Source: Mobula hypostoma
Lineage: Eukaryota
Direction: 5' to 3'
DNA: 64,000 nucleotides
NCBI RefSeq assembly: GCF_963921235.1
Contig: NC_086109.1
Span: 12,648,001-12,712,000, forward strand
Numbering within the stretch: the stretch's first letter is position 1; each line of letters opens with the position of its first letter. Shown piece after piece: positions 14,541 through 64,000 of this stretch. Made by a program: the position numbers and the translations under genes. The notes below the pieces were generated by a model that saw nothing but the letters and a program-made list of their open reading frames with translations, searched no databases and was not told the DNA's origin.

Positions 14541-14661
14541 TCTCCATGTAACCAATCAGCCTTTTACTCAAACCATGAGTTTCCACCTGCCAATCATGTA
14601 CTCTTGCTTGACTGCACTGGGTAAACACGTGAGACTGAATTTTCTTTCCCTGCCTCAACAG

Positions 14662-15441: not shown

Positions 15442-15836
15442 CAGTATACTGCAAATGCTTTAGGCATCTTCGATTCTTATATGGTCTCAGATGGTATCAT
15501 CTCCAGAGTCCTGATCACAACACCGAGGCTGTCTGTGATTGCTTGGAGAAGCAGAAGCCAAAGTCTGCAAAGGAAATGTGGCAAGTTCTCCAAGACACTT
15601 GGAACAACCTAGCAGCTGATTTTCTTATAAAACTGCATGACAGGGTACCCGAAAGAATTGAACTAGTTTTAAAGGCAAAGTGTGGTGACACCCAACTTTG
15701 ATTTGATTTAGTTTATTGCTGCTTAATGCACATTATAGTATTTTTAAATATTTAAATATTTTTCATTTCATTACTTTTGAAAGCATCGTCACTTTACAGA
15801 ATTCTCTTAAATGCACCTATATTTTGCACAGTAATG
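15442..15836 (+). mobile_element. Internally deleted Tc1-like element
   Basis: TA-flanked degenerate TIRs (CAGTATACTGCAAATG..TTTTGCACAGTAATG); transposase C-terminus QSPDHNTEAVCDCLEKQKPKSAKEMWQVLQDTWNNL..KAKCGDT. Confidence 0.8.
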
Positions 15837-16642
15837 TATCTAAACCCTATCTTCCAGCACAAGGTCCAAAGCCTACTATGGAGGTGTGACTTGAGATCTC
15901 ATTCAGACACTCCACAAACATTGACTGTGACTCTTTTTCCACCACTCTCTGGGTGAAAACAATCACTTCAAATCTAAATTCATGTCATCTAGTTTCATTT
16001 GCCTCTGAGAATGGAGAAGTTTGCTGTCACCTTTCCAACCTGTACATCTCATAATTTTATGTCCTTGGTGAAAAGGATTTTGAAGAATTACAGAGGATCT
16101 TGATGAGCTGAGTTTTTGGGCTGAGGAATAGCAAATGGAGTTTAATTCAGAATTGTGCAAAGTCTTGCATTTTCAAAAGTCAAATCAAGTAAGACTTTCG
16201 AAGTGATTGGTTGGGCCCTGGGAAGTGTTAAAGAACAACGGGATCTTGGAATTCAGGTACATGGTTCCTTGAAAGTGGAGTCACTATAGTGAAGAAGGTT
16301 TCTGGTATTAGAGTAGAGAATCTGGTACTCTGCTAAAAAAGAGAATTGTTATTCAACTGGATGAAGTGCAGAAAAGATTTCAAAGCTCAAAGTAAATTTA
16401 TTATCAAGGGAAATTTATTATACAACCCTGAGATTCATTTTCTAGTAGATCTACTGTAATTCCAACAACCATAATAGCATCAGTGAATGACTGCATTGCA
16501 AGATGTTGCCATTGCCTCGAGAAAATATGGTTTTATTCCAACTGATGATGTTTTTCTCCCTTCTCCAATCTGCCATTCAGTCAACATTATTTACTCCTCC
16601 AGCTCTGCTTATTTACCTCGCTCCACTCCACTAATGTTACAG

Positions 16643-16654
16643 AGAAAACAGGAG
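16643..16654 (+). CDS. 12-bp micro-exon between stalk and TM exons
   Basis: ttacAG|AGAAAACAGGAG|GTAAGT. Phase 2 to phase 2 keeps the frame between 14707 and 16727 (R-E-N-R-S). Confidence 0.5.
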
Positions 16655-16726
16655 GTAAGTATTTCAAACACAAAGCCATCTCGTTTCTGTATCTCACCTG
16701 TTCTGTTATTCTTCCCCTTTACGCAG

Positions 16727-16817
16727 TTTCATGATATTGAAGGTTGGTCGTTGGCTGCTCTTCGCTCTCCTGATGATCTGCACTATTTCGGTCACGTGGT
16801 TCACAAGGGAAACCAAG
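16727..16817 (+). CDS. Transmembrane exon with basic residue (activating-type receptor)
   Basis: ttcttcccctttacgcAG acceptor, (S)FMILKVGRWLLFALLMICTISVTWFTRETK, donor AAG|GTAGGC. Confidence 0.8.
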
Positions 16818-17031
16818 GTAGGCTTATGGAAAACAATAGAATTTGCATTCAAATATACTGATCATTTGAGGATGGTCAATCCAAAGCTATCTGCAGATGA
16901 TATTGACAAGATGTTGACACACTGTATGTATGCAGAATGCTTGATGTGAATATATTGGAATTCAAGCTCCAGATACAACTCTAAATCAGAGTTCCCAGTG
17001 TCGATGAGTCTGATGATTTGACCTTTTGCAG

Positions 17032-17079
17032 AGACGCGATGAATCAGATCCTCCCAGACTGGTCTATAAGGTAAAGTGA
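17032..17079 (+). CDS. Short cytoplasmic exon
   Basis: ccttttgcAG acceptor in phase 0, RRDESDPPRLVYK, then either donor AAG|GTAAAG at 17071 or read-through VK-stop (TGA 17077-17079). Confidence 0.55.
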   Translation, partial: RRDESDPPRLVYKVK

Positions 17080-36940: not shown

Positions 36941-36977
36941 ATGTGGACTTCAATTCCTCTGATTGGTTTCCTACCTG
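36941..36977 (+). pseudogene. Leader (signal peptide) exon of receptor pseudogene 1
   Basis: ATG TGG ACT TCA ATT CCT CTG ATT GGT TTC CTA CCT G|GTGAGT = MWTSIPLIGFLP, phase 1. Confidence 0.8.
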
Positions 36978-37228
36978 GTGAGTGACAGCAAGCACTGGTC
37001 ATTTGCGTTAGTTTGGAGGTCGTCCACCATTTGCAGAACAGAACTTGATGCGTGCAGACACTACAGATGATTGAATCTGGAGTTCAGAGCAAACTTCCGG
37101 AGGAAGTCAGTGAGCCAAGCAGCATCTGTTAGGGGGAAGAGAACTGTCGACAGTTTAGGCTGAGTCTCTGCATCAAGTCTGAGTGTAGAGGAAGATAGTG
37201 TAAATAGGAGAGGGGGAGATGTGCAACG

Positions 37229-37445
37229 CACCGCTCACACACAAAGTATTGGTACCATGGAGAGAGTCAACAATGTTCAGTTTTAGTGGAAACAAATGAG
37301 CAACACGGACGGAGTAGCCGAGTGTCAATCACAGATGACCCGGAATGGGGACTATTTGCTGTTACTATGGAGGATCTTCACAAGGGAGATACAGGATGGT
37401 ACGGCTGTAGAATTACAGCAACAGGTGTTGATACGAGATTTTATG
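37229..37445 (+). pseudogene. V-set Ig exon remnant of pseudogene 1 (both ends deleted)
   Basis: HRSHTKYWYHGESQQCSVLVETNEQHGRSSRVSITDD..FAVTMEDLHKGDTGWYGCRIT aligns to the 50125 V exon. No acceptor or first Cys; fused to repeats on both sides. Confidence 0.85.
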
Positions 37446-37744
37446 CTCATAGAATTGCTGCTCCATGGATAATTTTTTTTTTTGCTTTTTGCACTATTCT
37501 CTACCAACTCTAGAGACAGTGAGTGTGAAAATCCCAGGAGATCTGCATTATCTGAGATACTCAAATCACCGCTTACAATCATTTCATGAGTAAAGTTACT
37601 TTGATCACACTTCTTCCACATTCTGATGTTTGACCTGAACAACAACTGAATCTCTGGACCATGTCTGCATGCTTTTATGGACTGTGTTGAATTGAATTGA
37701 GTATATTTCTTACATCCTTCACATACATGAGGAGTAAATATCAT

Positions 37745-38775
37745 TACACTACATCTCTGTCTGATTCTGCAAAGTGCAATTTATAGTCATTTGTAATAAA
37801 TAGTACGTACAACAGGACAGTCAATATAGCATAGACATACAATTGTATCAGCGTGAATTAATCTGTCTGATGGCCTGATGGAAGAAGATGTCCCAGAACA
37901 GTTTGTGGTTAGGGTGACTTGGGTCCCTAATGATCCTACAGGCCTTTTTTATGCACCTATCACTATAAATATCCTGGATATTGGGAAGTTCACATCCACA
38001 GATGTGCTGGGCTGTCCACACCACTCTCTGCAGAGTCCTGTGATTGAGGGAGGTACAGTTCCCATACCAGGCCGTAATGCAGCCAGTCAGAATGCTCTCA
38101 ATTGTGTCCCTGTAGAAAGTCCTGAGGATTTGGGGACCCATGCCAAACTTCTTCAACCATCTGAGGTGAAAGAGTTGCTGTTGTGCTTTTTACGCCACAC
38201 AGCCAGTATGTACAGACCACTTGAGATCCTTGGTGATATGTATGCCAAGGAACTTAATGCTGTTTACCCTCTCAACCTCAGATCCATTGATGTCAATAGT
38301 GGTTAGCCTGTGTCCATTCCTCCTGTCATCCACAACAAGCTCCTTTGTTTTTGCGACATCGAGGGAGAGGTTGTTTTCTTGACACCACAGTGTCAGGGTG
38401 ATGACATCCCTGTAGGCTGTCTTGTTATTATTTGAGATAAGGCCAATCAATATAGTATCATCTGCAAATACAATCAGCAGATTGGAGCTGTAGGTGACAA
38501 CACCATCATGAGTATACAGAGAGTAAAGGAGGGCGCTTAGGACACAGCCCTGAGGGGCTCCTGTGTTGAGGGTCAGAGGGGCAGAGATGAGGGAACCCCC
38601 TTTTACCACCTGCCGGCGAACTGACAGGAAGTCCAGGATCCAGCTGCACAAGGCAGGGTGAAGGCTGAGGTCTCTGAGTATCTTGTCAAGCCTGGAGGGA
38701 ATTATGGTGTTGAATGCTGAACTGTGGTCCAAGAACAGTATCCTCACATCAGCATCCCTCTTCTCCAGGTGTGTA
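37745..38775 (-). mobile_element. Rex1/Babar-like LINE with partial RT
   Basis: Minus ORFs 38190-38747 (RILFLDHSSAFNTIIP, GAPQGCVLS.LLYSLYT, FADD) and 37848-38156. Confidence 0.9.
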
Positions 38776-38911
38776 AGTACGCTGCCACATGATTGGCTAA
38801 TTAGATATTTGCATTTACAAACAGGTGAACAGGTGCACCTAATAAAGTGGCAGAGGAGTTTTTGGTTTCATATGTTCATTTAGTGTCTGATTATTGAATT
38901 CCTTTCCACAG

Positions 38912-39150
38912 AACCTGTGTCTTCTTCTGTGCTTCGATATCTGTCAACAGCAAATGTTTCACGTCTCGGGGACTCAGTGTCAGTTTCCTGTGAGTCCTTG
39001 CAGGGATCCCTTCCCATTCAGTACACATGGTATGAAATAACCTCATCTGGGTATCCAACGGTATCAGGCACCAACGAAGTGGCTCTACGTTGTCAATCCT
39101 TCAAACACAAGTACCATCAATATTACTGCAGTGCCTGGAATTGGCACTGA
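38912..39150 (+). pseudogene. C2-type Ig exon remnant of pseudogene 1 (3' truncated)
   Basis: ttccacAG acceptor; (E)PVSSSVLRYLSTANVSRLGDSVSVSCESLQGSLPIQYTWY..YYCSAWNWH*; diverges into repeat where the 52619 exon continues. Confidence 0.85.
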
Positions 39151-40488: not shown

Positions 40489-40525
40489 ATGTGGATTTCG
40501 ATTCTTCTGATTAGTTTCCTACCCG
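40489..40525 (+). CDS. Lone leader exon (receptor gene 2); no Ig exon of its own found downstream
   Basis: MWISILLISFLP G|GTGAGT, with upstream TGTGGTTT and ACTTCCTG. Confidence 0.65.
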
Positions 40526-43128
40526 GTGAGTGACAACCAGCATGGGGCATTTTTATAATCAGTTTTGGTTTGCATTGTTTCCAAAACAGGGCTTGAATAC
40601 ATGTAGACACTAAAGATGTCAGAAACTGGAGTTCAGAGAAATCTCCTGGAGGAACTCAGCAGGCCAAGCAGCATCTGTCAGGGGAAAGGGAATTGTTGGT
40701 GGTTTGGGTTGAGTCCCTGCATTGAACCTGAGTGGAGAGGGAAAATAGTGTAAATAGGAGAGAGGAGATTGTGAAATAGGATCAGTTACTTGGACTGCAC
40801 CCCAGGGTTCTGAAGGAACTAACTGAAGAGATTGTAGAGGCATGAGTAATAATTTTCAAGTATGGTTCCAGAGGAATGGAAAACTACAAATGTCACTCAT
40901 TTCTTTAAGAAGAGAGGGAGACAAAAGGCAGAAAGTTATAGGACAATTAGTCCGACTTCAGTGGTTGGTAAGATGTCAGAATCTGTTATTAAGGATGAGG
41001 TTTCAGAGTACTTGGAGATATATGGTAAGATAGGCTGAAGTCAGCATAATTTGCTTAAGGAGAAATCTACCCTGCCAAATTTGTTAGAATTAACAGGCTG
41101 CATAGTGGATGATGTTTACTTGGATTTTCAAAATCCTTTTGACAAAGTGCTGCACTAGTCAAAGTCAAAGTAAATTTATTATCAAAGTACATGCATGTCA
41201 GCATATACTACTGTGAGATTCATTTTCTTTCAGGCGTTTAGAGAAAAATAAAGCAATGTGATAGAATTTGTGTAAACCTTCGTAAACGAAGTCAGACAAA
41301 CAACCAAGGTGCAAAAGAAGACCAATAGTGCAGATAAAAATACACATATTTTAATACATTATTTTCATACTGCGAGTATGAGCTGCAGAATCCTTGAAAG
41401 TGAGACTGATTCCATGTGTTGTGGAATCAGTTCACAGTTCAAGTGAGTGAAGTTATCCACATCGGTTCAGGAGTCTGATGGTTAAAGGGTAATTACTGTT
41501 CCTGAAAATTGGGGAGTAGACGCTGAAGGGTCTGAGCCCGAAACGTGGACAGTACCTGTTTTTGTAGATGCTGCCTGGCCTGCTAAGTTTCTCTGGCATT
41601 TGTGTGTTACTATAAGATCAATCTAATCCATCCCTTCTGAAGCTCTCCTATAATCCATAAGCCTATCTAAGAGTTTTTTAAGTGTATCTGCCTCTACCAT
41701 CACTCCTGGAAAGGCTTTTCTGCTCCCACCACTCTGTGTAAAGAACATGCCTCAGACACCCTCTCAATCCTTTCCTCTTTGGTTTTGATGATGTTGAATG
41801 AGAGATAGTTGTTGTGACACCATTCAGCCAGATTTTCAAACGTTCTCCTATATACTGATTGAACACACACAAGTGTTGAAGGAACTCAACAGATCAGGCA
41901 GCATCTATGTAAAGGAATTAGCAGTGGATGTTTTTGGGCCAAGACCCTTCATTGAACCCAGTTTCAGGTCAGGGACCCCTCCTCAGATCTGGATAAAAAA
42001 TGGAAGACTGTCAGTTTAGAAAGCAGATCTGCTCAGAGGAATGATGTGTAAGACAAAGACAATACAGTTCAGTCCCAGATGATGAAGCCCTGATTTATGG
42101 ACACTTCTGCATATGAAAACAGATCTCTACATAGTGATGTAAATTATTTGAAATATAAAACACAAAATAATTAATTGCATAAGTATTCACCTCCTTCAAG
42201 TCAGTACTTCGTAGATGCACTTTTGGCAACAATTACTGCTTTGAGTCTGTGTTCGAACTTCCGTATTCTTTACTTGTCTTATTCTGTAAAAATAGAATAT
42301 AGTTAAGTATCAATGGATGCCTCACGTAAACTAACTGTTGCAACCTTTCCCTGCATTGCCCTATCACTTCAGATCATAAGACGATGACACATAGTGGCAG
42401 AAGAAGGCCATTCAGCCCATTGAGACTGTATCACCATTCTATAATGGCTCATTTATTGTTCACCTCAACCCTATTCTCCCAGTACCTTTTGACACCCTTA
42501 CTAAACAAAAACCTATCAACCTCTGCTTTAAATATATCCAAGGACTTAGCCTCCTCAGCCATCTGTGATAATGAATTCCACAGAATCAGTACCTTTTGGT
42601 CAGGGACTCTTCTATCAGAGGAAACAGCCTCTCCATATAGACTCCAACCAAGGTCTAGGCCCTTCGCTATTCAAGAGGTTTCAATGAGAACCCTTCCCCA
42701 ATTCTTCGAAACTCCAGTGAGTACAGACCCCAAGACTTCAAGCACTCCTCACATATTTACCCTTTCATGCCTGGGATTGTTCTCGGGAACCTCCTCTGGA
42801 TCCGCTCCAATTACAGCACATCCTTTCAAAGATAAAGGGCCAAAAACTGTTCACCATCTTCCACGTGCAGTCTGACCAATACCTCATAAAGCTGCTCTTT
42901 TTGTATGACTTCTCAACAACCGAATGGAAAATGTTTTACAATCCCACCGTTGTATTTACAGGTATGCACAGTATTGGGATGAGGTTTAAACACAATGGTT
43001 AAATGACCTTTTCACTTTTCTTCACCAAATTGTTATCGTCATTCAGTGATCTAGCTGCTGAAACAAAAATACTTTGCTGAAGATGTTTTGTATCTCTGCA
43101 CTTGTTCTCATCAGCATATTGACCCATA

Positions 43129-48756: not shown

Positions 48757-48796
48757 ATGATGTGGACATTGATTCTTCTGATTGGTTTCCTACCTG
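48757..48796 (+). CDS. Leader exon of the (V-C2)2 CD300/pIgR/MDIR-like receptor
   Basis: MMWTLILLIGFLP G|GTGAGT, phase 1. Confidence 0.85.
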
Positions 48797-49732
48797 GTGA
48801 GTTTCAGACAGCACTGGACAACTGCATAATCAGTGTTGGATTGGGGGTCGTACAACATTTCCACAACAATGCTTGAATGCCTGTAGACACTAAAGATGTC
48901 GGAAACTGGATTTCAGAGTTCACTCCTGGAGAAACTCAAAGTGTCAAGCAGCATCTGTCAGAGGGAGGGGAAAGGCCAATGGTTTGGATCGAGACCCTGC
49001 CTCATGTGTGAGTAGAGAGGGAGAGGGTGTAAATAGGAGAGGGGGAAGCATGAAACTGGGTCCTCAAGTTAGACGGGGCTGAGGAGAGGTGAAGCACAAC
49101 AGGCAAATGGAGCGGGGTGGAGAAAGGATGGTGTTTGGAGATGGGTGAGAGGTGGAAGCAGATAAGGAGAAAAGAGGAATAGTGTAGAGCCCGGTGTGGG
49201 GAGAATATGTCCAGCTGGAGAAATCTACTGGAAGCTGTTAAGCGAGAACATCAGGTCTCCCATTGCTGGAATCTGATCTCACTCTTCAGGGATCACTATG
49301 ACATTCAACATTATTGTCTTGAAATCAGAGTTCTTCCTGGGCCACTTCAGTGGTGCAGTTAGCAGAGAACGTTACTAGATCTGGATTCAAAGGTAAACCA
49401 GGGTGGTAGGGATGAGAGATTTCTCTCCCTAAAAGCCTTTCCAATCCAGATGGGATTTTGACAATCTGGTAGTTCATCATGATTATTGAAACTTGTTTTT
49501 TAAATTCCAGAAATTATAAGTTGGATTCTAGCACTCAAAGTATCCCAACAGTTACTGAAATCACACCTGGATTTCTAGACACTAATGTACTAATGACCAC
49601 TGTTGCACCACCTTCTAACTACACATAGAAATACTTGATAGGTACAATATTTACAATTTGCTTCAAAACCAGAGGGCACAGTTTCAGACATTATGAGGGG
49701 TCTCTTTCTGCAGTTTATAAACTTCTCCGAGA

Positions 49733-49754
49733 ACACACACACACACACACACAC
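49733..49754 (+). repeat. (CA)n microsatellite in intron 1
   Basis: acacacacacacacacacacac. Confidence 0.9.
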
Positions 49755-50124
49755 AAAATTGGGAGCATCTTAGATGAAACAGCTGGGATCTCTGTGCACA
49801 TTTCAAAGGCTGACATAATCTGCGTAATTGAAAGTTCAACACTGCTGCTCTCCCTCAGTACTGCACCAGAAGATCAACCCTGGGTTTCTGCTCAGGACTC
49901 TGGAGTGGGAAGTGAACCCACAATGTACTGACACAGGGGAGAGAGATCACTGACACAGCTGACATAGTAACAGCACTGACTGCACTTCACACCAAAATCA
50001 TTAGCTGAGGTGTCGTGTTCCACATGCTGAATGTGACCTGGACCTGTTTTTACCATCATGTTGAAAGTTAATTGTTTGCATTAAATTGTTCCTTTCCCCT
50101 CAAATCTGAAAATGCCTCTCTCAG

Positions 50125-50445
50125 ATTCAGGTGCATTGTCGGCAAAGAAATATGTAAGGGGAGTTGTGGGAAGAGCGATCACAATTGATTGTCACTATGA
50201 AGAAATGTACCGCTCATACACAAAGTACTGGTGCCATGGATGGAGTCTCCAGTGTACAACTTTAGTGAAAACAAATGGGCAACATGGACAGAGTGGACGA
50301 ATGTCAATCACAGATAAGCTGAAACGAAGAATATTTACTGTTACTATGGATAATCTTCATTATGGAGATACAGGATGGTACAGCTGTGGAATTACAAGAG
50401 CAGTTGCCGATCTGCTGTTTAATGTACAAATACAAGTATCTGATG
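50125..50445 (+). CDS. V-set Ig exon 1 (CD300/pIgR-type, four Cys)
   Basis: ctctctcAG acceptor, 321 bp, phase 1-1, donor G|GTAGGT. SGALSAKKYVRGVVGRAITIDCHY..KYWCHGWSLQC..FTVTMDNLHYGDTGWYSCG. An alternative acceptor 6 nt downstream keeps the frame. Confidence 0.92.
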
Positions 50446-50499
50446 GTAGGTTTCTCAGTGATTAACTTTGTGCCTTCAGTAAAATAAATGTCTCATCCA

Positions 50500-51690
50500 T
50501 GGTTACTTTGGGAAATAAAGTGCCACATAAAAGACTTATCAAAAAGATAAAGATGCATAGAGTTGGGGCTGTGTATTATCATGGATAGAGGATTAGTTAA
50601 CGATTAGAAAGCAGAGAGTTGGGATACATGGGTGTCACTCTGGTTGGCAGTCAGTGGTAAGCGGTGTACCGCAGGGGTTGGTGTTGGGCCTGCAACTGTT
50701 GATTATATACATCAACGATCTGGAAGAGGAGACCAAGTGTTGCGTATCTAAGTTTGCTGATGTCACTAAATTGAATGGAAAAGCAAATTGTGCAGAAGGT
50801 ACGGAGAGTCTGCAGTTAGATATAGATAGGTTACGCGAGTGGGCAAGGGTCTGGCAGATGGAGTACAATATTGGTAAATGTGAGGTCATTCACTTTGGAA
50901 GGATAAATGAAAGAGCATATTATTATTTAAACAGTAAAAAAAATTGCATCATGCTGCTGTGCAGTGGGGCTTGAGAGTGCTTGTACATGAATCACAAAAG
51001 GTTGGTTTGCAGGTGCAGCAGGCTATCAAGAAGGCAAATGGAATGTTGGCCTTCATTGCTAGAGAGATTGAATTTGAAAGCAGAGAGGTTATGCTGCAAC
51101 TGTATGGGGTACTGGTGAGGCCGCACCTGGTGTACTGCATACAATTCTGGTCTCCTTACTTGAGGAAGGATACACTGGTTTTGGAGGCAGCGCAGAGGAG
51201 GCTCCTCAGGTTGATTCCAGAAACAAGGAGGTTAGACTTTGAGGAGAGATTGAGTCACCTGGGACTGTACTCACTGGAATTGAGAAGTATGAGAGGAGAT
51301 CTTATAGAAACATATAACATTATGAAAGGGATGGAAAAGATAGAGGCAGGAAAATTGTTTCCACTGGTACGTGAGACTAGAATTAGGCGACTTAGCCTCA
51401 AGATTTGGGGGAGTAGATTTAGGATGGAGATGAGGAGGAACTGCTTTTTCCAGAGAGTGGTGAATCTATGGAATTCTCTGCCCATTGAAGCAGTGGAGGC
51501 TACCTCAGTCAATATATTTAAGACAAGGTTGGATAGTTTTTTGCAAAGTAGGGGAATTAAGAGTTACGGGGAAAAGGCAGATAGGTGGAGATGAGTCCAT
51601 GGTCAGATCAGCCATAAACTTATTGAACTGTGGAGCAGGCTCGATGGGTCAGATAGCCTACTCCTGCTCCTATTTCTTTTGTTGTTATGT
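50500..51690 (+). mobile_element. CR1 3' fragment (second subfamily) in the V1-C2 intron
   Basis: GVPQGLVLG, FADVTK and LVRPHLVYC in ORFs 50654-50974 and 50944-51594. Further fragments at 40780-41160 and 53290-54230. Confidence 0.85.
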
Positions 51691-51989
51691 TCTTATGAAT
51701 GCTCAGAGCATTAGATGACCTGGGGAGTTGCGATGTGCTGATCCCAGGGTTAAACTTGTTGAATGGATAAATGCAATCTCCTCCTCCTCCTCCGCAGTCT
51801 CAGCAGAGTTACAAGATCTTTGTCTGGACCATGTCCATCCCTAAAGATCTCTGCATTAATCTCAGTGCCAAATGTTTCTCTCTGTACACTGAACCCCATC
51901 ACAAATTTATTTTCTCCTGAAGCCATCGAAAATCTGACGGTTATCTCACAAGCTACTGCTTTTAAACACTCAACCATCACTTTATTAGC

Positions 51990-52570
51990 TACCTCTTGTA
52001 CAGAATAAAGTAACCAATGGATGTATGTTTGTTGTCTTATGCTGCTGTAGCCCATCCACTTCAAGGTTCAATGTATTGTGCATTTAGAGATGCTCTTATG
52101 CAGACCACTGTTGTAACACATGGTTATCTTGAACACCTTTGTTGTGACACATCTGAATTCCTGTTATCTTTCCGTCAGCTTGAACCAGTCTGGCCATTCT
52201 CCTCTGACCTCTCTCATCAGCAAAGGTTTTCTGCTCAGAGAATTGCTGCTCACTGGATGTTACTCTTTGTTTTTGCACACCATTCTTTGCCAAGTCTAGA
52301 GACAGTGGGTGTGAAAATCCCAGGAGATCTGAAGTTTCTGAGATACTTAAACTCCCCAATCTGGCACCAACAATCATTCCATGGGTAAAGTTACTTTAAT
52401 CATATTTCTTCCTCATATTCCTGATATTTGGCCCGAACAACAAGTGAACCTCTTGACCATGTCGGCATCCTTTGATGAATTGTGTTTCTGCCACACAATT
52501 AGCTCATTCGATATTTGTATCAACGAGCAGGTGAACAGGTGTACTTAATAATATAGCCAAAGAGTGTTTG
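51990..52570. mobile_element. Tc1-derived MITE in intron
   Basis: Terminal acaggtgtacttaataa..gccaaagagtg and internal gaaaatcccaggagatc..tttctgagatactc; homologues at 37450-37660, 38780-38855 and 39170-39370. Confidence 0.55.
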
Positions 52571-52618
52571 ATTTTCAGATGTTTATTCAGGGTCTGAATA
52601 TTTAATTCCTTCCCACAG

Positions 52619-52939
52619 AACCTGTGTCTGTTCCTGTGCTTCGATATCTGTCATCGGCAAATGTCTCCCGTATCGGGGGCTCATTGACAGTTTCCTGTGA
52701 GTCCTTCCAGGGATCCCTTCCCATTCAGTACACATGGTATGAAAAAACCTCATTTGGGCATCTAAAGATCTCAGATACAAAAGAACTGGCTCTACATTGT
52801 CAATCCTTCAACCAGCAGCACCATCAATACTACTGTAGTGCCTCGAATTGGCATGGAGAAAGATCCAGTGCAATGGTTGATGTGACAGTCTTCAAAAACG
52901 GAGAGATCTGCAGCTATGTGACAGAAATCAATGGCACCA
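52619..52939 (+). CDS. C2/I-type Ig exon 1 (FcR-like)
   Basis: ttcccacAG, 321 bp, phase 1-1, donor A|GTAAGT. PVSVPVLRYLSSANVSRIGGSLTVSCESFQGSLPIQYTWY..LHCQS..YYCSASNWHG..ICSYVTEINGT. Confidence 0.92.
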
Positions 52940-55878
52940 GTAAGTCCTCCTTTCAAGAGAGGATACGTTTAAATATTTCTTTTTGTTCCTCTGTTACTGC
53001 TGCTCTTACACTTCTAGTTTGGGTAAGGAATATCTTTACATTTCTAGAAGCCACACATTGCAGTCACCATGGGGTAGAAATAAAGTGCAGAGAACAGTTA
53101 AGTCTGGCTCTTCGTCCAGGAAAACGTGGAGCATCTCAAACACAGTTGGATTTGCACATCCAGACAAATTGGGAGCATTGCATAAATATTTCTAGCTTCT
53201 ACACTGAAGATGCTAGAGTAGGTGTTGAGTTGTGGGACAGTGACACGTCATGCAAACAAAAGGAAGGGCATATAAAATAGCAAATATTAGTGGGACGTTA
53301 GAGAATTGGGGAACTTTTTAAAAGCAACAGAAGGCAATGAGAAAAGTCACGAGGAGAGAAAAGATGAAATTTTAAGGAAAACTAGCCAATAATATAAAAA
53401 AGGATACCAAAAATTTTCAGATATAAAAGTGTAAAAGAGAAGTGAGAGTGGATATCAAAACACTGGATAATGGAGCTGGAGAGATAGTAATAAGAGACAA
53501 AGAAACGGCGGACGAACCTAGTTACTAACTTGTAACAGTCGTTACTGAGGAAGGAATAAATAGAATGAAAGAAATCTGGGAACGTCAGGGGAGCAGAAGT
53601 GAGTGTGGTTGCTCTTGCTAAGGAGAAGGTGCTTGGGAGCTGAGAGGTCTGAAGGTAGATAAGTTACCTTGTCCAGATAGACTACACCCCAGGGTTCTGA
53701 AAGAGGCAACTGAAGAGATTGTGGTGGCATCAGTAGTGATGTTTCAACAATCACTAGATTTTAGAAAGTTCCAGAGAACTGGAAATGTCACTCCACTCAT
53801 TAAGAAGGAGGGGAGGGAAAAGGAAGGAAATTAGAGACCAGTTAGACTGACTTGAATATTTAGGAAAATGTTGAAGGCCATTATTAAGGATGAGGTTTCA
53901 GGGTACTTGGAGGCATATGATAAAATATGGTTTCCTCAAGGGGATATTTTACCTGAAAAAGATGTTGGAATTCTTTGAGGAAATAAGAGCAGGATAGACA
54001 AAGGAAAATCAGTGGATGTTGTTTACTTATATTTTTGGAAGGCCTTTGACAAGGTGTCACACATTGGGCTGTTGAACATGATAAGAACCTGTGGTAGCAC
54101 AAGAAAGATACTCATGTGTATAGAAGATTAGCTGACTGGCAGGAGGCAAAGAGTGGGAATAAAGGAGGCATTTCTGTTTTCTGTCAGTGACTCATGGTGT
54201 TCTGCAGGGGTCGGCCTTTGTGAATGTTTTCGGTGCTCTCTCTGATTTAATCATGCACTTCCTCTGGAACTGCACACAGCAATTGAGGTGAAGTCTAGAC
54301 AGTGTTCTTTATAGCTGTAACATGCCATCCCAACTGTACTTATTGCCTCATCCATTGAAGGCAAGCATGGCATCTGCCTTGTTCACCACTTTGTCCACCT
54401 GCGTTGCCACTTTCAGAGACCCATTTAGTTGTACACCTAGTTCTCTCCTATCCTTGTTTAATTTCCCAAAATTCAACTCTTCACACTGCCTGAGTTCAAT
54501 TCCATCAGCCATTTATTTCATTGGCCACTTTCCCAGTTCAAAGTTTAAAGTAAATTTATTATCAAAGTCTGTACACCCCAAACAAACTAGAGATTCATCT
54601 TCTTGCGGACACCCACAAAACAAAGTAACACAATGGAATCCACGACAAGCCACACACAATAAAGGCTGATAAATATCAAACGTGTAAAAGAAGGTAAATC
54701 ATGCAAACACTAAAAATCTGTAAACAAATAATACATAGAACATGAATCGCAGAGTCCCCAAAAGTGAATACACAGCTTCAGAGTCAGTTCGGTGCTGAGG
54801 TGAACGAAGCTGGTCCAGGAGCCGGTCGCGTGGGACCCAAGACTCCTCCACCTCCTGCCCAATGGTAGTAGCGAGAAGAGCAGGAGACAGGTCAAATTCA
54901 GGCAGACGGGATGGGCACAGGTACAGGGAATCTTGCTGACAGAGAGAAATGGAGCTGAACACTTGTTCATTTTCCAGATCCAGTTGTAAAATTCAACAAC
55001 TCTTTTCACTGTCCACTACATTACTGTGACGTCCACAAATTATTAATCATGACACCTACAATATTGTTACAAATTATCGATACAGATGAAAGTAACTGGT
55101 TAATAAATAAGAATACTGATCCCAGCAGCACTCAACTGGTGAAGAAGTCTAACATCGTCAAAAAAAAAACAACACTCCACTACCAATCTGACTCGTTCCA
55201 CCAAGCCTATTCAGTATCGATCCAGCTAGCATCCCATGTGATCTCACATTACAGATCAGTCTACAATGTGAGACCCTGTCAAAAGCCTTGCTAAACTCCT
55301 TACCTTCATCAGTCCCTTTGGTCAGCCTTTCAAAAAAACTCAGTCAATTTCATTTCAGAGAGGTTCTCTCATGCACAAAATCATGTTGGCTATCCCAAAT
55401 CAGATCTTGTCTTTACGAATTCAGGCAAATCCTGTCTCACACAATTGCCTCCAGTAAGTTACCCCGCCACTGATCTTTTCCTCACCTGCCTGGATTGGGA
55501 CTGACTCAGAAATGTGGAAACACACTGAGACATTAGTGGGCAGTGACAATGATGACTTCAATCAAATAACGTGTGAAGAGCTCTGAGTATGTGATGAGGA
55601 ACGATGGTGTTGATTTCTCAGTTTCCCTGGAATTCAATTATACCCATAGACAGTGTGGGCTGTTTCCTTGGAGCACAGTAACAGCTTCCAATAAAGCATC
55701 CTTATTCATTACTATTGCATTCTTTATCATTTTTTTTTGGTGCTGCATTGGATCCGGAGTAACAATTTTTTTTTGCTCTCCTGTACACTAGGGTGCTGGA
55801 AATGACACAAAATAATCTTTAATCTGCTTGTGCAAATTTGATTTTACCTGTCTATTTTTTGAAGAATATCTCCCTCAG

Positions 55879-56199
55879 TTTCAGGTGCTTTATGGGCAGA
55901 AGATAAAGTAAGAAGAGTTGTGGGAAGAGCGATCACAATCGATTGTCACTATGCACCAATGTACCGTTCACACACAAAGTATTTGTGCCGCCTGTGGGGT
56001 CTCCTATGCACATCGTTAGTGAACACAAATGGGAAAAATGAGCAGTATGGAAGAAGGACAATCAGAGATCACACATCCCAGGGAACATTAACTGTTACTA
56101 TGGAGAATCTTGCCTCTCAAGATACAGGAATTTACAGATGTGGAATTACAACATCTGGCAATCATCCAGTGTTTGATGTGAATCTGCACGTATTTGACG
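55879..56199 (+). CDS. V-set Ig exon 2
   Basis: tccctcAG, 321 bp, phase 1-1, donor G|GTAGGT. SGALWAEDKVRRVVGRAITIDCHY..KYLC..LLC..LTVTMENLASQDTGIYRCG. Confidence 0.92.
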
Positions 56200-57329
56200 G
56201 TAGGTTTCTCATTGATTGACTTGGCGTCTCCACCAAATTGTCTGATTCATGTTTTCTCTGGGAATGGTTAGGGCAGCACCGATATCCTGAGGATCTGTAG
56301 AGGTACAGACTCCCACAGGGAGTGGCTGAGGATCAGGAAACCTCGCTCATATAGCTCTCACTCACTGACTGGAAACTGATTTCCAGTGGGAGGCTCGGCA
56401 CATTTTCCTGCCTCTGAACTGTATGAAATGTTACACTCTCGAAGTTTACTTTCAGACTAAAACTAATAATCTGAGAATAAGAAGTCAATGAGAAGCAAGT
56501 GTAACTCATGATCTAAATACCTCAAAAATCATAAAAAAGCAATCAAATCCAGATCAAAACAGCCTGTGTTCATTCCTCCTAGGCCAGGCTATCCCACTTC
56601 CCATCCGTGCTTCAAGTAGCACTCACTCCCTCCCCTACCACGTGCTCTTACTCTCTGTCCCCCACAATGTGCTCCAGTGTTCCACCTCTCAGCACCCATT
56701 GACTATCCACTTCCTGGCAGCCAGACTCTTCATCTGGCCCGTTGCTGTGGGAAATGGAGCAATGGAACTAGAGGGAACTTGGGACACATTCCAGACCAAG
56801 AATAGACTCTTTGGCCCACCATGGCTGCACTGATCATGATGTCATTCTAAGCTCATTCCATCATATTATATATGGTCCATATTCTTCCAGTCTCTCCTTT
56901 TTCATGTCCTCATCTAAAAGCCTCTTAAATATTGTTATGATATCCTTTTCTTCCAGCCAGTCTGACTTTGTGTTTCATGGAGCCACCACTTAGTGTAAAA
57001 AAAACTTGTTTTACAAACGTCCTTTAAACTTTCCCCCAGCTCACCTTAAAACTATACTCACTATTATTTGATATTTTAACCTTGGGAAAAAAATTATGAC
57101 TATTTTCCTTACATATGACTTCAGTCATTTTATGAACTTCTCACAGGTCTCTCCTCAGCCTCCTGTACACCAGCAAAAACAATTCTAGTTTGTTGAACTT
57201 CAACCCATAGTTAATACACTTCAATCCCAGTAACATTCATTCCTTCATTTATTTATTTATCCATCCATTTATTGATTTGTTTGTTTGCTTGTTTGTTTCT
57301 TCCTTTATGAAACACAATGTGGAATAGGA

Positions 57330-57610
57330 TCTTCCAGCCCTTTAAACTGTGCACCCAGTAACTCCGAGATTTAACTCCAGCCTAAACTTCGGACAATTTT
57401 CAATGACTAATTAACCTACCAATAAAAACAATTATTAAAAAAAACCTATCAAGTTCTTGGTCTTTGGACTGTGGGAGGAAACCAGAGCACCTGGAGGAAA
57501 CCCACGCGGTCATAGGGAGAACGTACAAACTCCTTACAGACAGCAGCAGGAATTTAACCCGGGTCACTGGTACGGTAAAGTGTTGTGCTAACCGCTACAC
57601 TACCATGCCA
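57330..57610 (-). mobile_element. V-SINE/HE1-like SINE
   Basis: gactgtgggaggaaaccagagcacctggaggaaacccacgcggtcatagggagaacgtacaaactcc..gtgctaaccgctacac. A plus-strand relative lies at 62545-62830. Confidence 0.75.
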
Positions 57611-57906
57611 GCTTGGTGTTATCTTCACCTGGTAAAGTCTTTACTCTCCTCCAAAACCGCCACATCTTTTCTAGAGTGTTGGAACCAGAACTACAAATTA
57701 CTGTATGTTGCAAATGTGCCCAAACAAAAGTTTTATGAAGCTACAAAGTGCCTTGTCAGCTTCAGTCTCCAACATGTAGAATGAAGAAGGCAAACATGCT
57801 GAATGCTTTCATTACCATTATATCCAGTTCTGTTGCTACTTTCAGGGAGCAATGGACTTGTATCCCAAGAACTCTCTGTACATGAACTGTAAAGGGATCC
57901 AGATAT

Positions 57907-59645
57907 TACGAGGGGTGATTGATCAGTTCGTGGCCCAAGATAGAAGGAGTCAATTTTAGAAAACCTAGCACAGTTATTTTTCAACATTGTCCCCTCTTAC
58001 ATTTACACACTTAGTCCAGCAGTCATAGAAACATAGAAGATAGGTGCAGGAGTAGGCCATTCAGCCCTTCAAACCTGCACCACCATTCAGTATGATCATG
58101 GCTGATCATCCAACTCAGAACCCTGTACCTGCCTTCTTTCCATACCCCCTGATCCCTTTAGCCACAAGAGCCATATCTAACTCCCTCTTAAATATAGCCA
58201 ATGAACTGGCCTCAACTGTTTCCTGTGGCAGAGAATTCCACAGATTCACCACTCTCTGTGTGAAGAAGTTTTCCCTCATCTCGGTCCTAAAAGGCTTCCC
58301 CTTTATCCTCAAACTGTGACCCCTCGTTCTGGACTTTCCCAACATCGGGAACTATCTTCCTACATCTAGCCTGTCCAAAACCTTTAGAACTTTATATGTT
58401 TCAAGAAGATCCCCCCTCAATCTTCTAAATTCCAGAGAGTATAGGCCTAGTCAATCCAGTCTTTCTTCATATGAAAGTCCTGCCATCCCAGGAATCAATC
58501 TGGTGAACCTTCTTTGTACTCCCTCTATGGCAAGGATGTCTTTCCTCAGATTAGGGGACCAAAACTGCCACAATACTCCAGGTGTGGTCTCACCAAGGCC
58601 TTGTACAACTGCAGTAGTACCTCCCTGCTCCTGTACTCGAATCCTCTTGCTATGAATGCCAGCATACCAGGTCTCGTTGCACCTCCCCCTTTCCTAATCG
58701 GCCACCATTCAGATAATAATCTGTTTTCCTTTTCTTGCCACCAAAGCGGATAACCTTATATTTATCCATATTAAATTGCATCTGCCAAGAATTTGCCCAC
58801 TCACCTAACCTATCCAAGTCACCCTGCATCCTCCTCACAGCTAACACTGCTGCCCAGCCTCGTGTCATCCGCAAACTTGGAGATGCTGCATTTAATTCCC
58901 ATGTCTAAGTCATTTATATATATTGTAAACAACTGGGGTCCCAGCACTGAGCCTTGCGGTACCCCACTAGTCACTGCCTGCCATTCTGAAAAGGTCCCAC
59001 TTATTCCCACTCTTTGCTTCCTGTTTGCCAACCAATTCTCTATCCACATCAATACCATACCACCAATACCGTGTGCTTTAAGTTTGCACACTAATCTCCT
59101 GTGTGGGACCTTGTCAAAAGCCTTTTGAAAATCCAAATATACCACATCCACTGGTTCTCCCCTATCCACTCTACTAGTTACATCCTCAAAAAATTCTATG
59201 AGATTCGTCAGACATGATTTTCCTTTCACAAATCCATGCTGTCTTTGTCTGATGATTTCACCGCTTTCCAAATGTGCTGTTATCACACCTTTGATAACTG
59301 ACTCTAGCATTTTCCCCACCACCGATGTCAGGCTTACCATTCTATAATTCCCCAGTTTCTCTCTCCCTCCTTTTTTAATAAGTGGGGTTACATTAGCCAC
59401 CCTCCAATCCTCAGGAACTAATCCAGCATCTAAAGAGTCATGGAGCATACAGATCCATTCTTTGTAGAAGCCGGCGTTTTGGACTTCCAGAAAGTGGTCC
59501 ACATCAGAGGTGATTGATACGTTCATGGCCTAAAGTAGAAGGAGATGAGTTATTAACTTCAAACTTTCTGCATAATGCATTTTCACTCAAAGAGTTGAAC
59601 TGCACGTGCATGTAACGAGAGCTGTATAACTCATCTCCTTCTGAC
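57907..59645 (+). mobile_element. Mariner-like MITE interrupted by a CR1
   Basis: TA-CGAGGGGTGATTGAT start; internal second copy at ~59510; inverted repeat agaaggagatgagttat / ataactcatctccttct. Confidence 0.65.
58027..59435 (-). mobile_element. CR1-type LINE (young family, copy 3), 5'-truncated with internal deletion
   Basis: Minus ORF 58819-59526 (YLDFQKAFD, GVPQGSVLGP, FADD); AGTCAT on both sides (58021-58026, 59436-59441); the segment from LGV to LLQL is missing near 58660. Confidence 0.9.
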
Positions 59646-60037
59646 TTCACAAAATGAAGTCACCATTCATTTTGTATGTATCTGACAATTTCCTGCTTTC
59701 AACCTATGGAGAGTTTTCCAGAACACCCACAAGTGCTGCTATTCCAGAGTCAAACTGTTAGGTCTCACTTTAGAGTGTTTCCCCGCTGCTGAGAGAGACT
59801 GAAGCCCTGATTTTCACACTGACACACTCTGTGTCATCACTGTTGTTCTGATCAGGAGTCCTGCTGTTTTCGGTGATACTGACAGACATGGACGTTCTGG
59901 CAGCTCTGAGGATGACGAGACACAGTGGAGTAGATGAGCTGCTGAGATTCCAAACTGGTGTCTCCCGGTTGAGATACAGAACTGCTGAAATCTTTAGTGT
60001 GTTTGATTTTCAGATGTTCACTAATTCTGTTCCACAG

Positions 60038-60358
60038 AACCTGTGTCTCTTCCTTTGCTTCGATTTTCACCACAAACAAATGGCTCAAGTTGTGGGGACT
60101 CCGTGTCAGTGTCCTGTGAGTCTGTCCATGGGTCCCTTCCCATTCAGTACTCATGGTATGAAAAGACGCCATCTGAGGATTCAAAGATCTCTGACACAAA
60201 TAAACTGGATCTACATTGCCAATCCATAAAATACAAAAATTATCTGTATTATTGCAAAGCCTCAAATATTAATGGAGAGAAGTCCAGTGAAGTGGTCAAT
60301 GTATCCATCTCCAACAGTGTCAGCACCTGCAGAAATGTGATTGAAGTCAACAGCATGG
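60038..60358 (+). CDS. C2/I-type Ig exon 2
   Basis: ttccacAG, 321 bp, phase 1-1, donor G|GTAAGT. PVSLPLLRFSPQTNGSSCGDSVSVSCESVHGSLPIQYSWY..LHCQS..YYCKASN..TCRNVIEVNSM. Confidence 0.92.
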
Positions 60359-61819
60359 GTAAGTGCTGGAGGGTTTGATTCTTTATGATGGTCAATGGAG
60401 TACAACTGAATGACTGATGTGTGCTGGATATTGTGTTGTTGGAACTTCACTCAGGAGCATGAAGTGCATGTTGTCACCACCTTTTAGAGAATGAAAAGCT
60501 TTTTGGCCCAGCAGTTCAAATGTGAGTCTCTCAGCACAGGGTCTCCTGTCTCTGATCTGACTCTTGCTGGCTGGGTGTGAATGTATCTCATCTGGTAATA
60601 TTTCTGGCCATTCATTAAGATAGTCCTTCCAAGATAAATCACTTCAAAGTTGAAAGTAAATTAAGTTTTTGTCACTATATACTACCCCGAGATCCATTTT
60701 CTTGCAGGCATTCACAGTAGATACAAATGAATACAACAGACTCAATGTAAAACTACACACAATCAAAAATGGTCAAACAATGTGCAAAATAAGATAAATT
60801 GTGCAAATACAAAAGAAACAAATAATAAATAAATAAATAACAAGAGAATATCTGCAGATGCTGGAAAGCAAAGCACCACACACAAATTGCTGGAGGTACT
60901 CAGAAGGCCAGGGAACACCTATTGAAAAGAGTCATCAGTCATTGTTTCGGGCTGAGACCCTTCATTAGGACTGGAAAGGAAAGGAGATTAGAAGTCAACG
61001 TAAGAAAGTCAGTGGGAGAAGATGGAGAAGTACAAGGTGAAATGGAGAGAGTGGGAGGGGTGAAGTAAAGAGCTGGAAAGTCAATTGGTGAAAGCGATAA
61101 AGGGCTGGGGGAGGGGAAATCTGATAGGAGGGGACAGAAGGCCATGGAAAGCAGGGAAAGTGGAGGCTCGCCAGGGGGAGGTCATGGGCAGGTTAGGAGA
61201 TTGGTGAGAGAGGGAAAGGGGAAAGGGGAAAGGTGAAGGAGATAAACAAATAAATACTGAGAAGATGAACTGTAGAATCCTTGAAAGGGAGTCCATTGGT
61301 TGCAGAATCAGTTCAGTGTTGGTGAGTGAATTTATCCATGATGTTTCAGGAGCCTACAGGTTGCAGATAATAACTGGACTGAACCTGGTGATACGGGATC
61401 TAAGCCCCCTGCAACTCCTTCGTACTGACAGCAGCAAGAAGAGAGCATGGCTTGGATGGTAGGGGTTCTTGCTGCTTTGATACTCTCTTGTGCGCAGGAC
61501 TCACCGCCTCGATTTGGCCCATACCCGATCTTTCCTTTCTGGCCTGAAGCTTAAATCGATCAGACATTGACTCGAGCCTCAGTCTTGGGCCACCAGCATT
61601 GTCAGCAGATTTGGTCCGATGAAAGATGTTCTTGTTAAGGAAGAAGGCAAGTGAAGGATCGCCAGACTGATTTCCGGAATGCCACAAGTGACACAAGATC
61701 AGAGATTTGGTTGATTGGGTTTATATTTGATGGAGTTCAGCAGGTTGAGATGTGATCGCATAGAACTGTGCAATATTTTAGTAGGGGGATATGTGCTGAA
61801 CTGATGCAGGTAGGATGCT

Positions 61820-62250
61820 TCAAATGCCAGGGAATACAGGATGGTCTATGGAGTCCTACCTCCAAGAGAACCACAAATTTGGAGGCTTGCATGCCTCAAT
61901 GACCCAGAGAGCTCTGATGGCTGTTATTCTTTGGCAGTTCATCGGGTCACCCATGCCAAACAGGTCAAAGGGCAGAGGCCAGACTTAGAGTGGTCCACCA
62001 ATCCTCCAGGTTCGGGGGATTCGCTCAGGACTGACAAGCCTGACTGGTTAAACAAAATCGTCATGGAAACAGGAATGAAAAATCCTTCTCCATCAGAGTT
62101 TGACAGTATTGCTCGGTCTCTACCTGAGACTTGCATGACTGACGGCAGTGAAAACCGAGATGAATCTACTGACACAATGAAGGAAGCCCCGAACACTGCC
62201 AGAGTTAGGAGACCTTCATTGCTGCCCGAAACACCAGTCGTGTAACAGAC
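61820..62250 (+). mobile_element. Probable RTE-clade LINE 5' UTR fragment
   Basis: gcttgcatgcctcaatgacc..gggtcacccatgccaaacaggtcaaagggcagaggccagac resembles RTE/Rex3-type 5' UTRs (from recall, not searched). Confidence 0.45.
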
Positions 62251-62971
62251 AGTAAGTAAGAAAGCTTGGAATCTTAGAAATAATATGAAGGGTGAAACAG
62301 ATAAGACTGGGATTAGGAAAGATTTCTTCTCCCAGAATGTGGTGAACATGTATTGAAGAAAGATTGAGTTATTTTTCTCAGAGGTAGAGAGATCAAGAGA
62401 TTTGAGAAACAAAAGACCTTGCCTTTTCATTGAGAAAACCTCCTGCATTATCCTATTGGATAAAAAGTGTACTTGAACCATTATCTCCCTGTATCCAAAT
62501 TGCCAGTAAATGTAATTGGCTGCACAGGAGCACAGCAATTACTGTAACAGTATTACAGCGCCAGCGATCAGTGATCAGGGTCCAATTCCCACCACTGTTT
62601 GCAAGTTGTTCGTACGTTCTCCCAGCGACTGTGTGGGTTTCCTCCGGGTGCCACAGTTTCCTCCCACGTTCCAGAGATGCACAAGTTAGGATGAGTAAGT
62701 CCTGTGCAAGCCATTTTGGTGCTAGAAGCATAGAACCCTTGCAGGCTGCCCCCAGCACAAACTCTGTTGGTCGCTGTTGTAAACAATACATTTGACTGCA
62801 TGATCTGATGTACGTGTGACAAATAAATCTCATATTTAATCTTTAAATGTGCATCAGGTAATAGATCACCTTTTGTCCACCATGTTCAAGTACTTATTGG
62901 TCTAACAATTGTGCTCTCTTGTTCTTGCAAGTACAAAGCAGATGAAATTTTATTTTATTTTCTTTTAACAG

Positions 62972-63048
62972 GGAGAATTGATTTCTGTGAAAATACTGTG
63001 ACAGAATTGATGACAACTGCACAAAGGAAAGAAACTACTTCAGCTGAA
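62972..63048 (+). CDS. Stalk exon with apparently mutated donor, reading through to a stop
   Basis: ttttattttattttcttttaacAG acceptor, (G)RIDFCENTVTELMTTAQ-AG|GAAAGA, compared with TA-AG|GTAAGT at 14707. The frame continues RKETTFS-TGA (63046-63048). Confidence 0.65.
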
Positions 63049-64000
63049 ATGTAAAGTATAAGGTTTTCGCTGCAGGGGGTTTCACTGCTACTGCTTTCAA
63101 GTACAGCCAGTTGGGAGAGAAATGTGTTTTTCTTTAACTAGTGTTTATCATATTTGACCTGATTAACTTCAACAAACTCATATCTTGGAAACTGAGTATT
63201 CCTGATTTTCTTGAACATGCATCAAGCCTGAGATCAAAGATAAATTTCTTTTCCCCAAATATTTAATAATTTAAGCATAGCAGTTGAAACTCGTGTAGAA
63301 TCATAAAGTCTTTGTTATATATTAGAACAACAGGCCCTTCAGCCTGACTCGTCCAAGCCAACCAAGATGTCCATCTAAGTTCAGCACGTTTAATTTTATT
63401 TATTCCACATCCTTCTCTGCCAAGGGCTCCCAACCTGGGGTCAAGTCCAGTCCAGTCCAGTCAATTCAAGTTTATTGTCATTTAACTATATAAATGTATA
63501 CTGTCCAGTGAGACACTGTTTCTCCAAACCAAGGTGTAAAGCACTGCAGTATACATAATGCTTAATAACTTATGAAAGTGAGAATGAAATCCACAGATTA
63601 ATTACACATAAATAAACAAACTGAAGTGCATGAATTAAGTATTGTCAGGCCCAGGGCATAAAAAAGTTTGTGAACCCCTGTTCTAAGCCTTTCCTATCCA
63701 CATATCTGTCAAAATGTCTTTTAACCTTTGTAACTGTATCCACTTCTATGGATCGCTGTGGCAGCTTGCTCCATATACCCAAGACCCTCTGTATATAAAG
63801 TTGCTCCTTAGGTCCTTTCCCTACTCAATTTTAGCCTGCACCTGCTCATTGTAAAATGACAGTGATCATTCACCTTATCGATGCCCCTCATGATTTTATA
63901 TACCTCTGTTAAATGACCCGTCAGCATTCTAAGCTCCAGGGCAAAAGTCTCAGCCTATCCAACCCTCCATTATAACTCTAGCCCTCCATTCTCAGGATTG

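Follow-up and report, generated by a model that had tools for sequence, protein, structure and literature searches.

The devil-ray stretch analysed here (Mobula hypostoma, NCBI RefSeq assembly GCF_963921235.1, contig NC_086109.1, positions 12,648,001 to 12,712,000 of the forward strand; 64,000 nucleotides without any N, hereafter the window) carries an immune receptor gene made of a leader exon, four immunoglobulin (Ig) exons in the order V1, C2-1, V2, C2-2, and a stalk exon. We propose, with a probability of roughly 0.85, that this gene is a member of the modular domain immune-type receptor (MDIR) family of cartilaginous fish and is a single transcribed gene of V-C2-V-C2 layout. Below we lay out the exon structure, the spliced joints, the family relationships and the domain types on which this proposal is built, and then weigh what speaks against it.

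Scanned in all six frames for long stretches without stops and with an Ig-like spacing of Cys and Trp, the window gave six on the plus strand, at 37208, 38884, 50085, 52606, 55863 and 60025. The gene itself begins with a plus-strand leader exon (48757-48796), which has an ATG-ATG start, runs for 13 codons plus 1 base and leaves in phase 1 at the donor G/GTGAGT (the slash marks the exon end); the Mobula relatives P0014 and P0006 (such numbers are our handles for the relatives) begin with the same 13 residues as its peptide, MMWTLILLIGFLP. Four Ig exons follow on the same strand, each 321 bp long and in phase 1-1: V1 (50125-50445), a CD300/pIgR-type V-set domain with two Cys pairs; C2-1 (52619-52939), a membrane-distal C2-type domain; V2 (55879-56199), an internal V-set domain of what we call the V2 type, with KYLC and not KYWC; and C2-2 (60038-60358), a membrane-proximal C2-type domain. 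All four have polypyrimidine-AG acceptors, and their donors are, in order, G/GTAGGT, A/GTAAGT, G/GTAGGT and G/GTAAGT. At V1 and V2 there is a second in-frame AG six bases downstream (ATTCAG/ and TTTCAG/), and by both the reads and the relatives the first AG is the one used. The stalk exon (62972-63050, plus strand, 79 bp) encodes one free Cys, enters in phase 1 and leaves in phase 2 at AT/GTAAAG; we put its end at 63050 because the sole GT donor after the Gln codon at 63022-63024 lies at 63051.

Spliced together, the leader, Ig and stalk exons form an open frame of 467 codons. Direct reading thus confirms what an earlier sequence-only reading of this DNA had claimed, namely a leader and four 321-bp phase-1 Ig exons that splice in frame with canonical signals and no stops. 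The open frame of its product stands as well, with 467 codons in place of the earlier length of about 465 residues; the gene end that it had set at 63048 is indeed the last full codon before ATG-TAA, and we place the exon end at 63050. By simple arithmetic, a 107-codon stop-free frame has a chance of about 0.6%, and here there are four such frames with splice signals and Ig profile matches, so that chance is no issue for the four open Ig exons. Within the gene, V1 and V2 are 56% identical in protein and 73% in DNA, and C2-1 and C2-2 are 51% and 71% identical, respectively.

The question of whether these exons belong to one transcript or to two genes can be put to sequencing runs in which 0.52-0.88 of the words of the V2 exon are present; the runs are small, come from one study and bear the same organism label, and four of them were aligned to 50240-56239. 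Two of these, X8 (depth 8.8, 32 letters on the shorter side) and X4 (depth 4.4, 35 letters on the shorter side), contain the joint from 52939 to 55879, with GT..AG borders, and C2-1 is therefore spliced directly onto V2. The joint from V1 to C2-1 (50445 to 52619, GT..AG) is present in contigs of runs X1 and X2. Exon contigs match without a single mismatch (e.g., 52624-52812, 52714-52926, 55962-56180 and 55962-56199), the unique intron bins at 53040-53239, 54240-54439 and 55040-55639 have zero depth, and the intron bins that are deep correspond to interspersed repeats of 95-99% likeness. The introns hold two copies of a reverse-transcriptase-bearing interspersed repeat, at 50580-51700 (plus strand, between V1 and C2-1) and 58020-59530 (minus strand, between V2 and C2-2), which lie in opposite orientation, are 65-67% identical to each other and are the source of the very deep contig bins. 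We took the runs to be RNA, since spliced joints can hardly have another source. The sequence-only reading had named junction reads across 52939-55879 as the way to tell one gene from two, with V2 on a separate leader, or C2-1 spliced elsewhere, as the sign of two; the exact joint is there in two runs, and among the joints listed neither the donor of C2-1 nor the acceptor of V2 has any other partner. In total, these observations support a single transcribed gene that runs from leader through V1, C2-1, V2 and C2-2 to stalk. One contig appeared to join V2 back to V1 (55989 to 50240); it is an artefact, a V1 contig whose 5' part was placed on the 88%-similar V2 at the edge of the aligned stretch.

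MDIRs are type I membrane proteins that carry either cytoplasmic immunoreceptor tyrosine-based inhibitory motifs (ITIMs) or a charged transmembrane residue, and some members have neither. The family is said to have been named in the clearnose skate by Cannon et al. in 2006 (Immunogenetics 58:362, as cited in PMC3031540), with an abstract that reportedly describes a modular ectodomain of CD300/pIgR-like and Fc receptor (FcR)-like Ig domains, varying in number from one to six. The window gene has such an ectodomain, V-C2-V-C2, built of CD300/pIgR-like and FcR-like Ig domains, and the clustering of the family is seen here too, in that the window also contains, besides a dead V-C2 unit and the leader that goes with it, an orphan leader and the stalk, Arg-bearing transmembrane and tail exons of another member.

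Membership is borne out by sequence comparison, as the sequence-only reading had called it. With P0005, a stingray relative described below, as query, three clearnose skate (Rostroraja eglanteria) proteins came back under their MDIR names: MDIR3 (P0177, 701 residues, E 1e-234, V-V-C2-V-C2), MDIR5 (P0203, 501 residues, E 8e-173, V-C2-V-C2) and MDIR2 (P0232, 416 residues, E 2e-106, V-C2). Their domains are 55-68% identical to those in the window, domain by domain, and in both the V and the C2 trees the skate MDIR domains are nested among other ray domains. A full HMMER scan with C2-1 returned 144 proteins at E<=1e-10, and all of the close matches (50-79% identity) come from sharks, skates and rays; RefSeq names these relatives 'polymeric immunoglobulin receptor-like', 'Fc receptor-like protein 5' or 'uncharacterized'. 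Among the relatives fetched, the layouts include VC (36), VCVC (28) and VCVCVC (16), with VVCVC, VCC and others besides. P0005 itself, from Hemitrygon akajei (XP_072886821.1, 597 residues), has four domains whose best counterparts are, from first to last, V1, C2-1, V2 and C2-2, at 71, 77, 74 and 84% identity. It shares the junction between C2 and V2, EINGT-ISGALWAEDKV, and continues into a stalk, an uncharged transmembrane segment and three ITIM-like motifs.

The four domains are of two kinds. In Pfam, V1 and V2 match V-set (1e-10 and 1e-9), and both C2 exons match Ig_2, Ig_3 and Ig_C17orf99 at about 1e-5. The four Cys of V1 (36, 50, 57 and 101) and of V2 (250, 264, 271 and 315) align Cys for Cys with the first domain (D1) of pIgR, and the KYWC and DxGxYxCG motifs of V1 align with the same domain. 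By sequence, V1 matches CLM-1/CD300lf at 1e-17 (68 bits) versus 2e-11 (47 bits, single-domain) for pIgR D1. The four-Cys CD300/pIgR pattern that the sequence-only reading had seen in the V domains is thus well founded. A structure model of V1, built from 26 family V domains, is confident (predicted local distance difference test, pLDDT, 94.8) and superposes on CD300lf with a template modelling score of 0.93-0.95 and a root-mean-square deviation of 1.2-1.3 A at 35-36% identity, followed in the structural ranking by CD300a, pIgR D1, TREM2 and NKp44. Structure prediction had been suggested as a check, and by this model V1 is a CD300-type V domain. As for the C2 exons, they align with the repeated membrane-proximal domains of FCRL5 (a PVS.PVL start, GSLPI.Y, YYC.A.N), and C2-1 matches FCRL5 (9loc_A) at 4.8e-5 for the best single domain and 1e-31 summed over repeats, in keeping with the FcR-like character ascribed to them earlier. 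Beyond cartilaginous fish, C2-1 is nearest to multi-C2 proteins of other fish, which bear automatic names such as CD22-like and sialoadhesin-like. In V2 (55881-56198) and in P0005, P0014, P0015, P0063 and P0249, the near-universal Trp of the C strand (KYWC) is Leu (KYLC); most copies have a Trp three residues downstream, and the pattern is shared by third domains from Mobula, Hemitrygon and Hypanus.

This combination sets the gene apart from better-known families. CD300 proteins (CD300lf/CLM-1, CD300a) share with it the fold of V1 and the extra C-C' disulfide pattern, and both families occur in paired ITIM and charged-transmembrane forms, but CD300 is a single V on a stalk, without C2 or a second V, whereas in the window gene two of the four Ig domains are C2. 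pIgR, whose D1 aligns with V1 at all four Cys and the motifs and is the origin of the RefSeq name, consists of V-type domains only (five in mammals, two in teleosts), while domains 2 and 4 in the window are C2/FCRL-like. FCRL proteins and classical FcRs lack a CD300-type V, which is what domains 1 and 3 are here. The gene lies outside CD300, pIgR and FCRL/FcR as such, its ectodomain being neither single-V nor V-only nor C2-only. MDIR5 and MDIR3, in contrast, alternate the same two domain kinds, each V with a VSGALWA start and each C2 with a Cys-bearing tail, and the MDIR family has paired ITIM-type and Arg-transmembrane-type tails. These skate proteins do differ from it in coming from another order of rays, and the V2 and C2-2 subtypes of the window are common to Mobula, stingrays and sawfish and not to the skate copies. 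Closer still are P0005 and the Mobula birostris proteins P0173 and P0163, with the same order of V1, C2, V2, C2 and stalk, the same 107-residue spacing per domain and an identical junction between C2 and V2. Because none of the three closely matches all four domains (V1 is at most 73% identical), they are paralogues or fast-evolving orthologues.

A similar alternation is found in the DICPs of bony fish, whose D1a-D2a-D1b-D2b forms have four alternating domains, one exon per domain, and lie in gene clusters with inhibitory, activating and secreted forms (bioRxiv 10.1101/2021.06.11.448072). The likeness to the window gene is one of published architecture, and D1/D2 may or may not be homologous to V/C2. 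DICPs have been reported from teleosts, holosteans and coelacanth only (bioRxiv 10.1101/2021.06.11.448072), and an Atlas look-alike search on the DICP link returned only generic Ig clusters, with scores <0.9, which speaks neither for nor against it.

How old is the internal V-C2 duplication? Quick IQ-TREE trees of 53 V and 54 C2 domains, rooted on Callorhinchus and with support given as the Shimodaira-Hasegawa-like approximate likelihood ratio (SH-aLRT), sort the domains by position. V2 falls in a clade (support 100) made solely of third domains from VCVC proteins of Mobula, Hemitrygon and Hypanus, with sawfish third domains adjoining; C2-1 falls in a clade (97) of second domains of ray VCVC proteins; and C2-2 falls in a clade (99) of membrane-proximal C2 domains, where it adjoins M. 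birostris P0173 (97). Since the V2, C2-1 and C2-2 clades are arranged by position across rays, the split into four position-specific subtypes is older than the divergence of devil rays and stingrays. The trees thus indicate that the V-C2-V-C2 layout was inherited from the ancestor of devil rays and stingrays and has no recent local origin. They also place the V and C2 domains of the window with ray and skate MDIR domains, which covers the MDIR part of the phylogenetic check raised in the sequence-only reading. Because the duplication is old, tandem duplication and gene fusion look alike at this locus. The sequence-only reading had argued that V2 was copied from a first-domain exon, since it starts with SGALWA, taken as the tail of a signal peptide. 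This argument turns out to be weak. Every family V domain, first or internal, in rays, skates (MDIR3, MDIR5) and sharks, opens with (V/I)SGALWA or a near variant, and these residues fall at mature residues 1-8 of pIgR D1 in the alignment; because the motif is on all family V exons, it is a hallmark of the family and says nothing of a recent first-exon origin for V2. Sharks (Scyliorhinus, Heptranchias; P0200, P0204 and P0202) present another picture, in that a single VCVC protein has first and third domains that hardly differ from each other, with end branches of 0.01-0.1, which points to repeated or recent re-duplication of the module or to homogenisation by gene conversion.

Several points weigh against the proposal that this is one transcribed MDIR gene encoding a membrane receptor. 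That the runs are RNA is a guess, and they yield short contigs from a single study. The joints have just 32-36 letters on the shorter side and a depth of 4-10, and those seen are V1 to C2-1 and C2-1 to V2; the joints from leader to V1, V2 to C2-2 and C2-2 to stalk lie outside 50240-56239. No public protein is at least 90% identical on all four domains (the best values per domain are 73, 86, 87 and 95% for V1, C2-1, V2 and C2-2), and no one-to-one orthologue stands behind the full model. An exact public protein for the gene was likewise not found in the homologue and representative searches, in which a longer fused model could be missed. Further, the 3' end is outside the window: a hydrophobic-exon scan and tblastn with relatives found no transmembrane exon in 63051-64000, and the membrane anchor is predicted by analogy with relatives. 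Finally, M. birostris P0173, P0249 and P0250, which stand nearest to the gene in C2-2 and stalk, carry a transmembrane segment of activating type, opposite to the inhibitory type that we prefer.

That preference concerns what follows the stalk. tblastn of P0005, P0063 and P0004 against the window matches the stalk at 62968-63048, and in ITIM-type relatives an I, M or T codon stands at the end of the stalk before the transmembrane segment (..FK-I-PTYII.., ..HK-M-PTYI.., ..PQ-T-HTYT..). Given this codon, the donor at the end of the stalk exon (63051) appears to be kept (exon sizes and the stalk donor of the relatives were worked out from their proteins alone). The related genes span 20-24 kb versus the 14.3 kb seen here, so that further exons are expected beyond the window, and the gene almost certainly runs off its end. 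Because the phase-2 exit of the stalk exon falls where ITIM-type relatives have theirs, we favour an inhibitory form, tentatively and at somewhat less than even odds.

An activating partner, built like M. birostris P0173, P0249 and P0250, in which the stalk would be joined to an Arg-bearing transmembrane exon (...KVGRWLLF...) and a short tail, is less likely, with several observations in its favour. C2-2 is 95% identical to domain 4 of P0173, the first 18 stalk residues are those of P0173, P0249 and P0250, all three with an Arg transmembrane segment, and an exon of that type is present elsewhere in the window, at 16725-16817. However, by protein comparison these three exit the stalk after ..TTAQ in phase 1, where the window (63026-63027) reads GG and not GT, and the sole later donor, at 63051, is in phase 2 and fits the ITIM-type transmembrane exon of P0005, P0063 and P0153. 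It is more doubtful that a soluble, secreted protein of four Ig domains is all that the gene makes, with the stalk donor unused or no transmembrane exon downstream. On read-through past 63050 the frame stops at TAA 63052-63054, two codons beyond the exon; the donor AAT/GTAAAG is weak; the Hypanus sabinus model P0175 has the same ending, ...SPEM plus stop; one AATAAA/ATTAAA-type signal lies at 63611; and the last 950 bases of the window are those without a transmembrane exon. Yet P0005, P0063, P0152, P0153, P0163 and P0164 go on from the same position into a transmembrane segment and tail, the size of the related genes leads one to expect more exons past the window, and RefSeq models with read-through ends are often truncated models.

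Could the exons instead belong to two adjacent genes, leader-V1-C2 and V2-C2-stalk-transmembrane, with the four-domain product a minor chimera of occasional read-through splicing? Such an origin, one of the two that the sequence-only reading had raised, was proposed for the four-domain DICPs, through loss of the terminator and signal peptide between neighbouring genes (bioRxiv 10.1101/2021.06.11.448072). Some H. akajei RefSeq models end after V1-C2 with intron read-through (P0016) or begin inside V2 (P0211), and the VCVC model P0226 of Callorhinchus, in view of its complete internal leader, is an annotator's fusion of two genes; for that reason we rejected it as proof of the layout in chimaeras. 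In the window, however, the three leader copies have their ATGs at 36941, 40489 and 48760, with none between C2-1 and V2, and no second leader, signal-peptide-like exon, transmembrane exon or tail remnant was found in that intron by self-BLAST, a 3-mismatch pattern scan, a scan for hydrophobic ATG..GT phase-1 exons or tblastn with full-length relatives. A T-rich hydrophobic frame at 55693 was considered as a leader or transmembrane exon and rejected, being the pyrimidine tract that precedes V2. With the two runs that connect the C2-1 donor and the V2 acceptor only to each other, and with C2 leading straight into V in many ray, skate and shark proteins, including MDIR5, which derives from complementary DNA, two separate genes are very improbable, and a single gene remains our reading. 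Just as hard to credit is a copy that is decaying or non-functional, part of a birth-and-death cluster and transcribed without making a working receptor. In favour of it, dead family pieces lie upstream (a 5'-truncated V at 37208-37450, a 3'-truncated C2 at 38902-39146 and the orphan leader at 40489) and V1 shares no more than 73% identity with any known relative. Against it, none of the six exons contains a stop and their splice sites are canonical, the gene retains every structural Cys as well as the DxGxYxC motif and the residues invariant in the family, the V1 model is a confident one and spliced transcripts are present.

The upstream pieces belong to the same family. The dead V-C2 unit (36941-39146, plus strand) has an intact leader exon at 36941-36977 (MWTSIPLIGFLP, G/GTGAGT). 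Its leader intron runs straight into the V exon, which has lost its first third and has Tyr in place of the C-strand Cys; its C2 exon, 84% identical in DNA to C2-1, is cut at 39146 and followed by a displaced piece of intron. A third leader exon, at 40489-40525 (MWISILLISFLP, G/GTGAGT), has no V exon of its own before the leader at 48757 and may either serve as an alternative first exon or be a relic. The DNA 3' of it (40793-41476) resembles both the intron between C2-1 and V2 (53680-54568) and the region after C2-2 (60670-61355). Farther upstream, the 3' end of another family member lies at 14652-17079 (plus strand), with a stalk exon (..GREYTCETFTTVSTA) and the Arg-bearing transmembrane exon at 16725-16817 (SFMILKVGRWLLFALLMICTISVTWFTRETK); its last exon, near 17026-17079, ends in ..RRDESDPPRLVYKVK and a stop. 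This tail is of activating type; Ig exons for it were not found in the 14.6 kb before it.

By analogy with its full-length relatives, the protein would be a type I leukocyte surface receptor with, in order, a signal peptide, a CD300-type V, a C2, a second V of a distinct subtype, a membrane-proximal C2 and a Cys-bearing stalk. We speculate that the N-terminal V domain would bind the ligand, our best guess being one of lipid type, as for CD300, and that the tail would signal either via ITIMs or via a charged transmembrane Arg that recruits an adaptor. To our knowledge, cartilaginous fish have J chain and polymeric IgM and no recognised pIgR. One might imagine that V-C2-V-C2 MDIRs stand in for pIgR, with the pIgR-D1/CD300-type V and the FcR-like C2 binding polymeric immunoglobulin and with the soluble ending (...EM plus stop, as in the stingray model) as a secretory-component-like or decoy form, although we consider this a long shot.

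Our analysis is a sound annotation and not a discovery. The MDIR family has reportedly been known since 2006, as have its modular design of exons and the V-C2-V-C2 layout, and with family and layout already in hand no new question is opened. What is added is a well-resolved, transcript-supported four-domain MDIR member from a devil-ray genome. It should help those who annotate such clusters, in which automatic names (pIgR-like, FCRL5, CMRF35-like, CXADR-like) mask a single family. For the family itself, each of the four domain positions in rays is an old subtype specific to that position, in contrast to sharks, where the V domains within a protein are almost the same.

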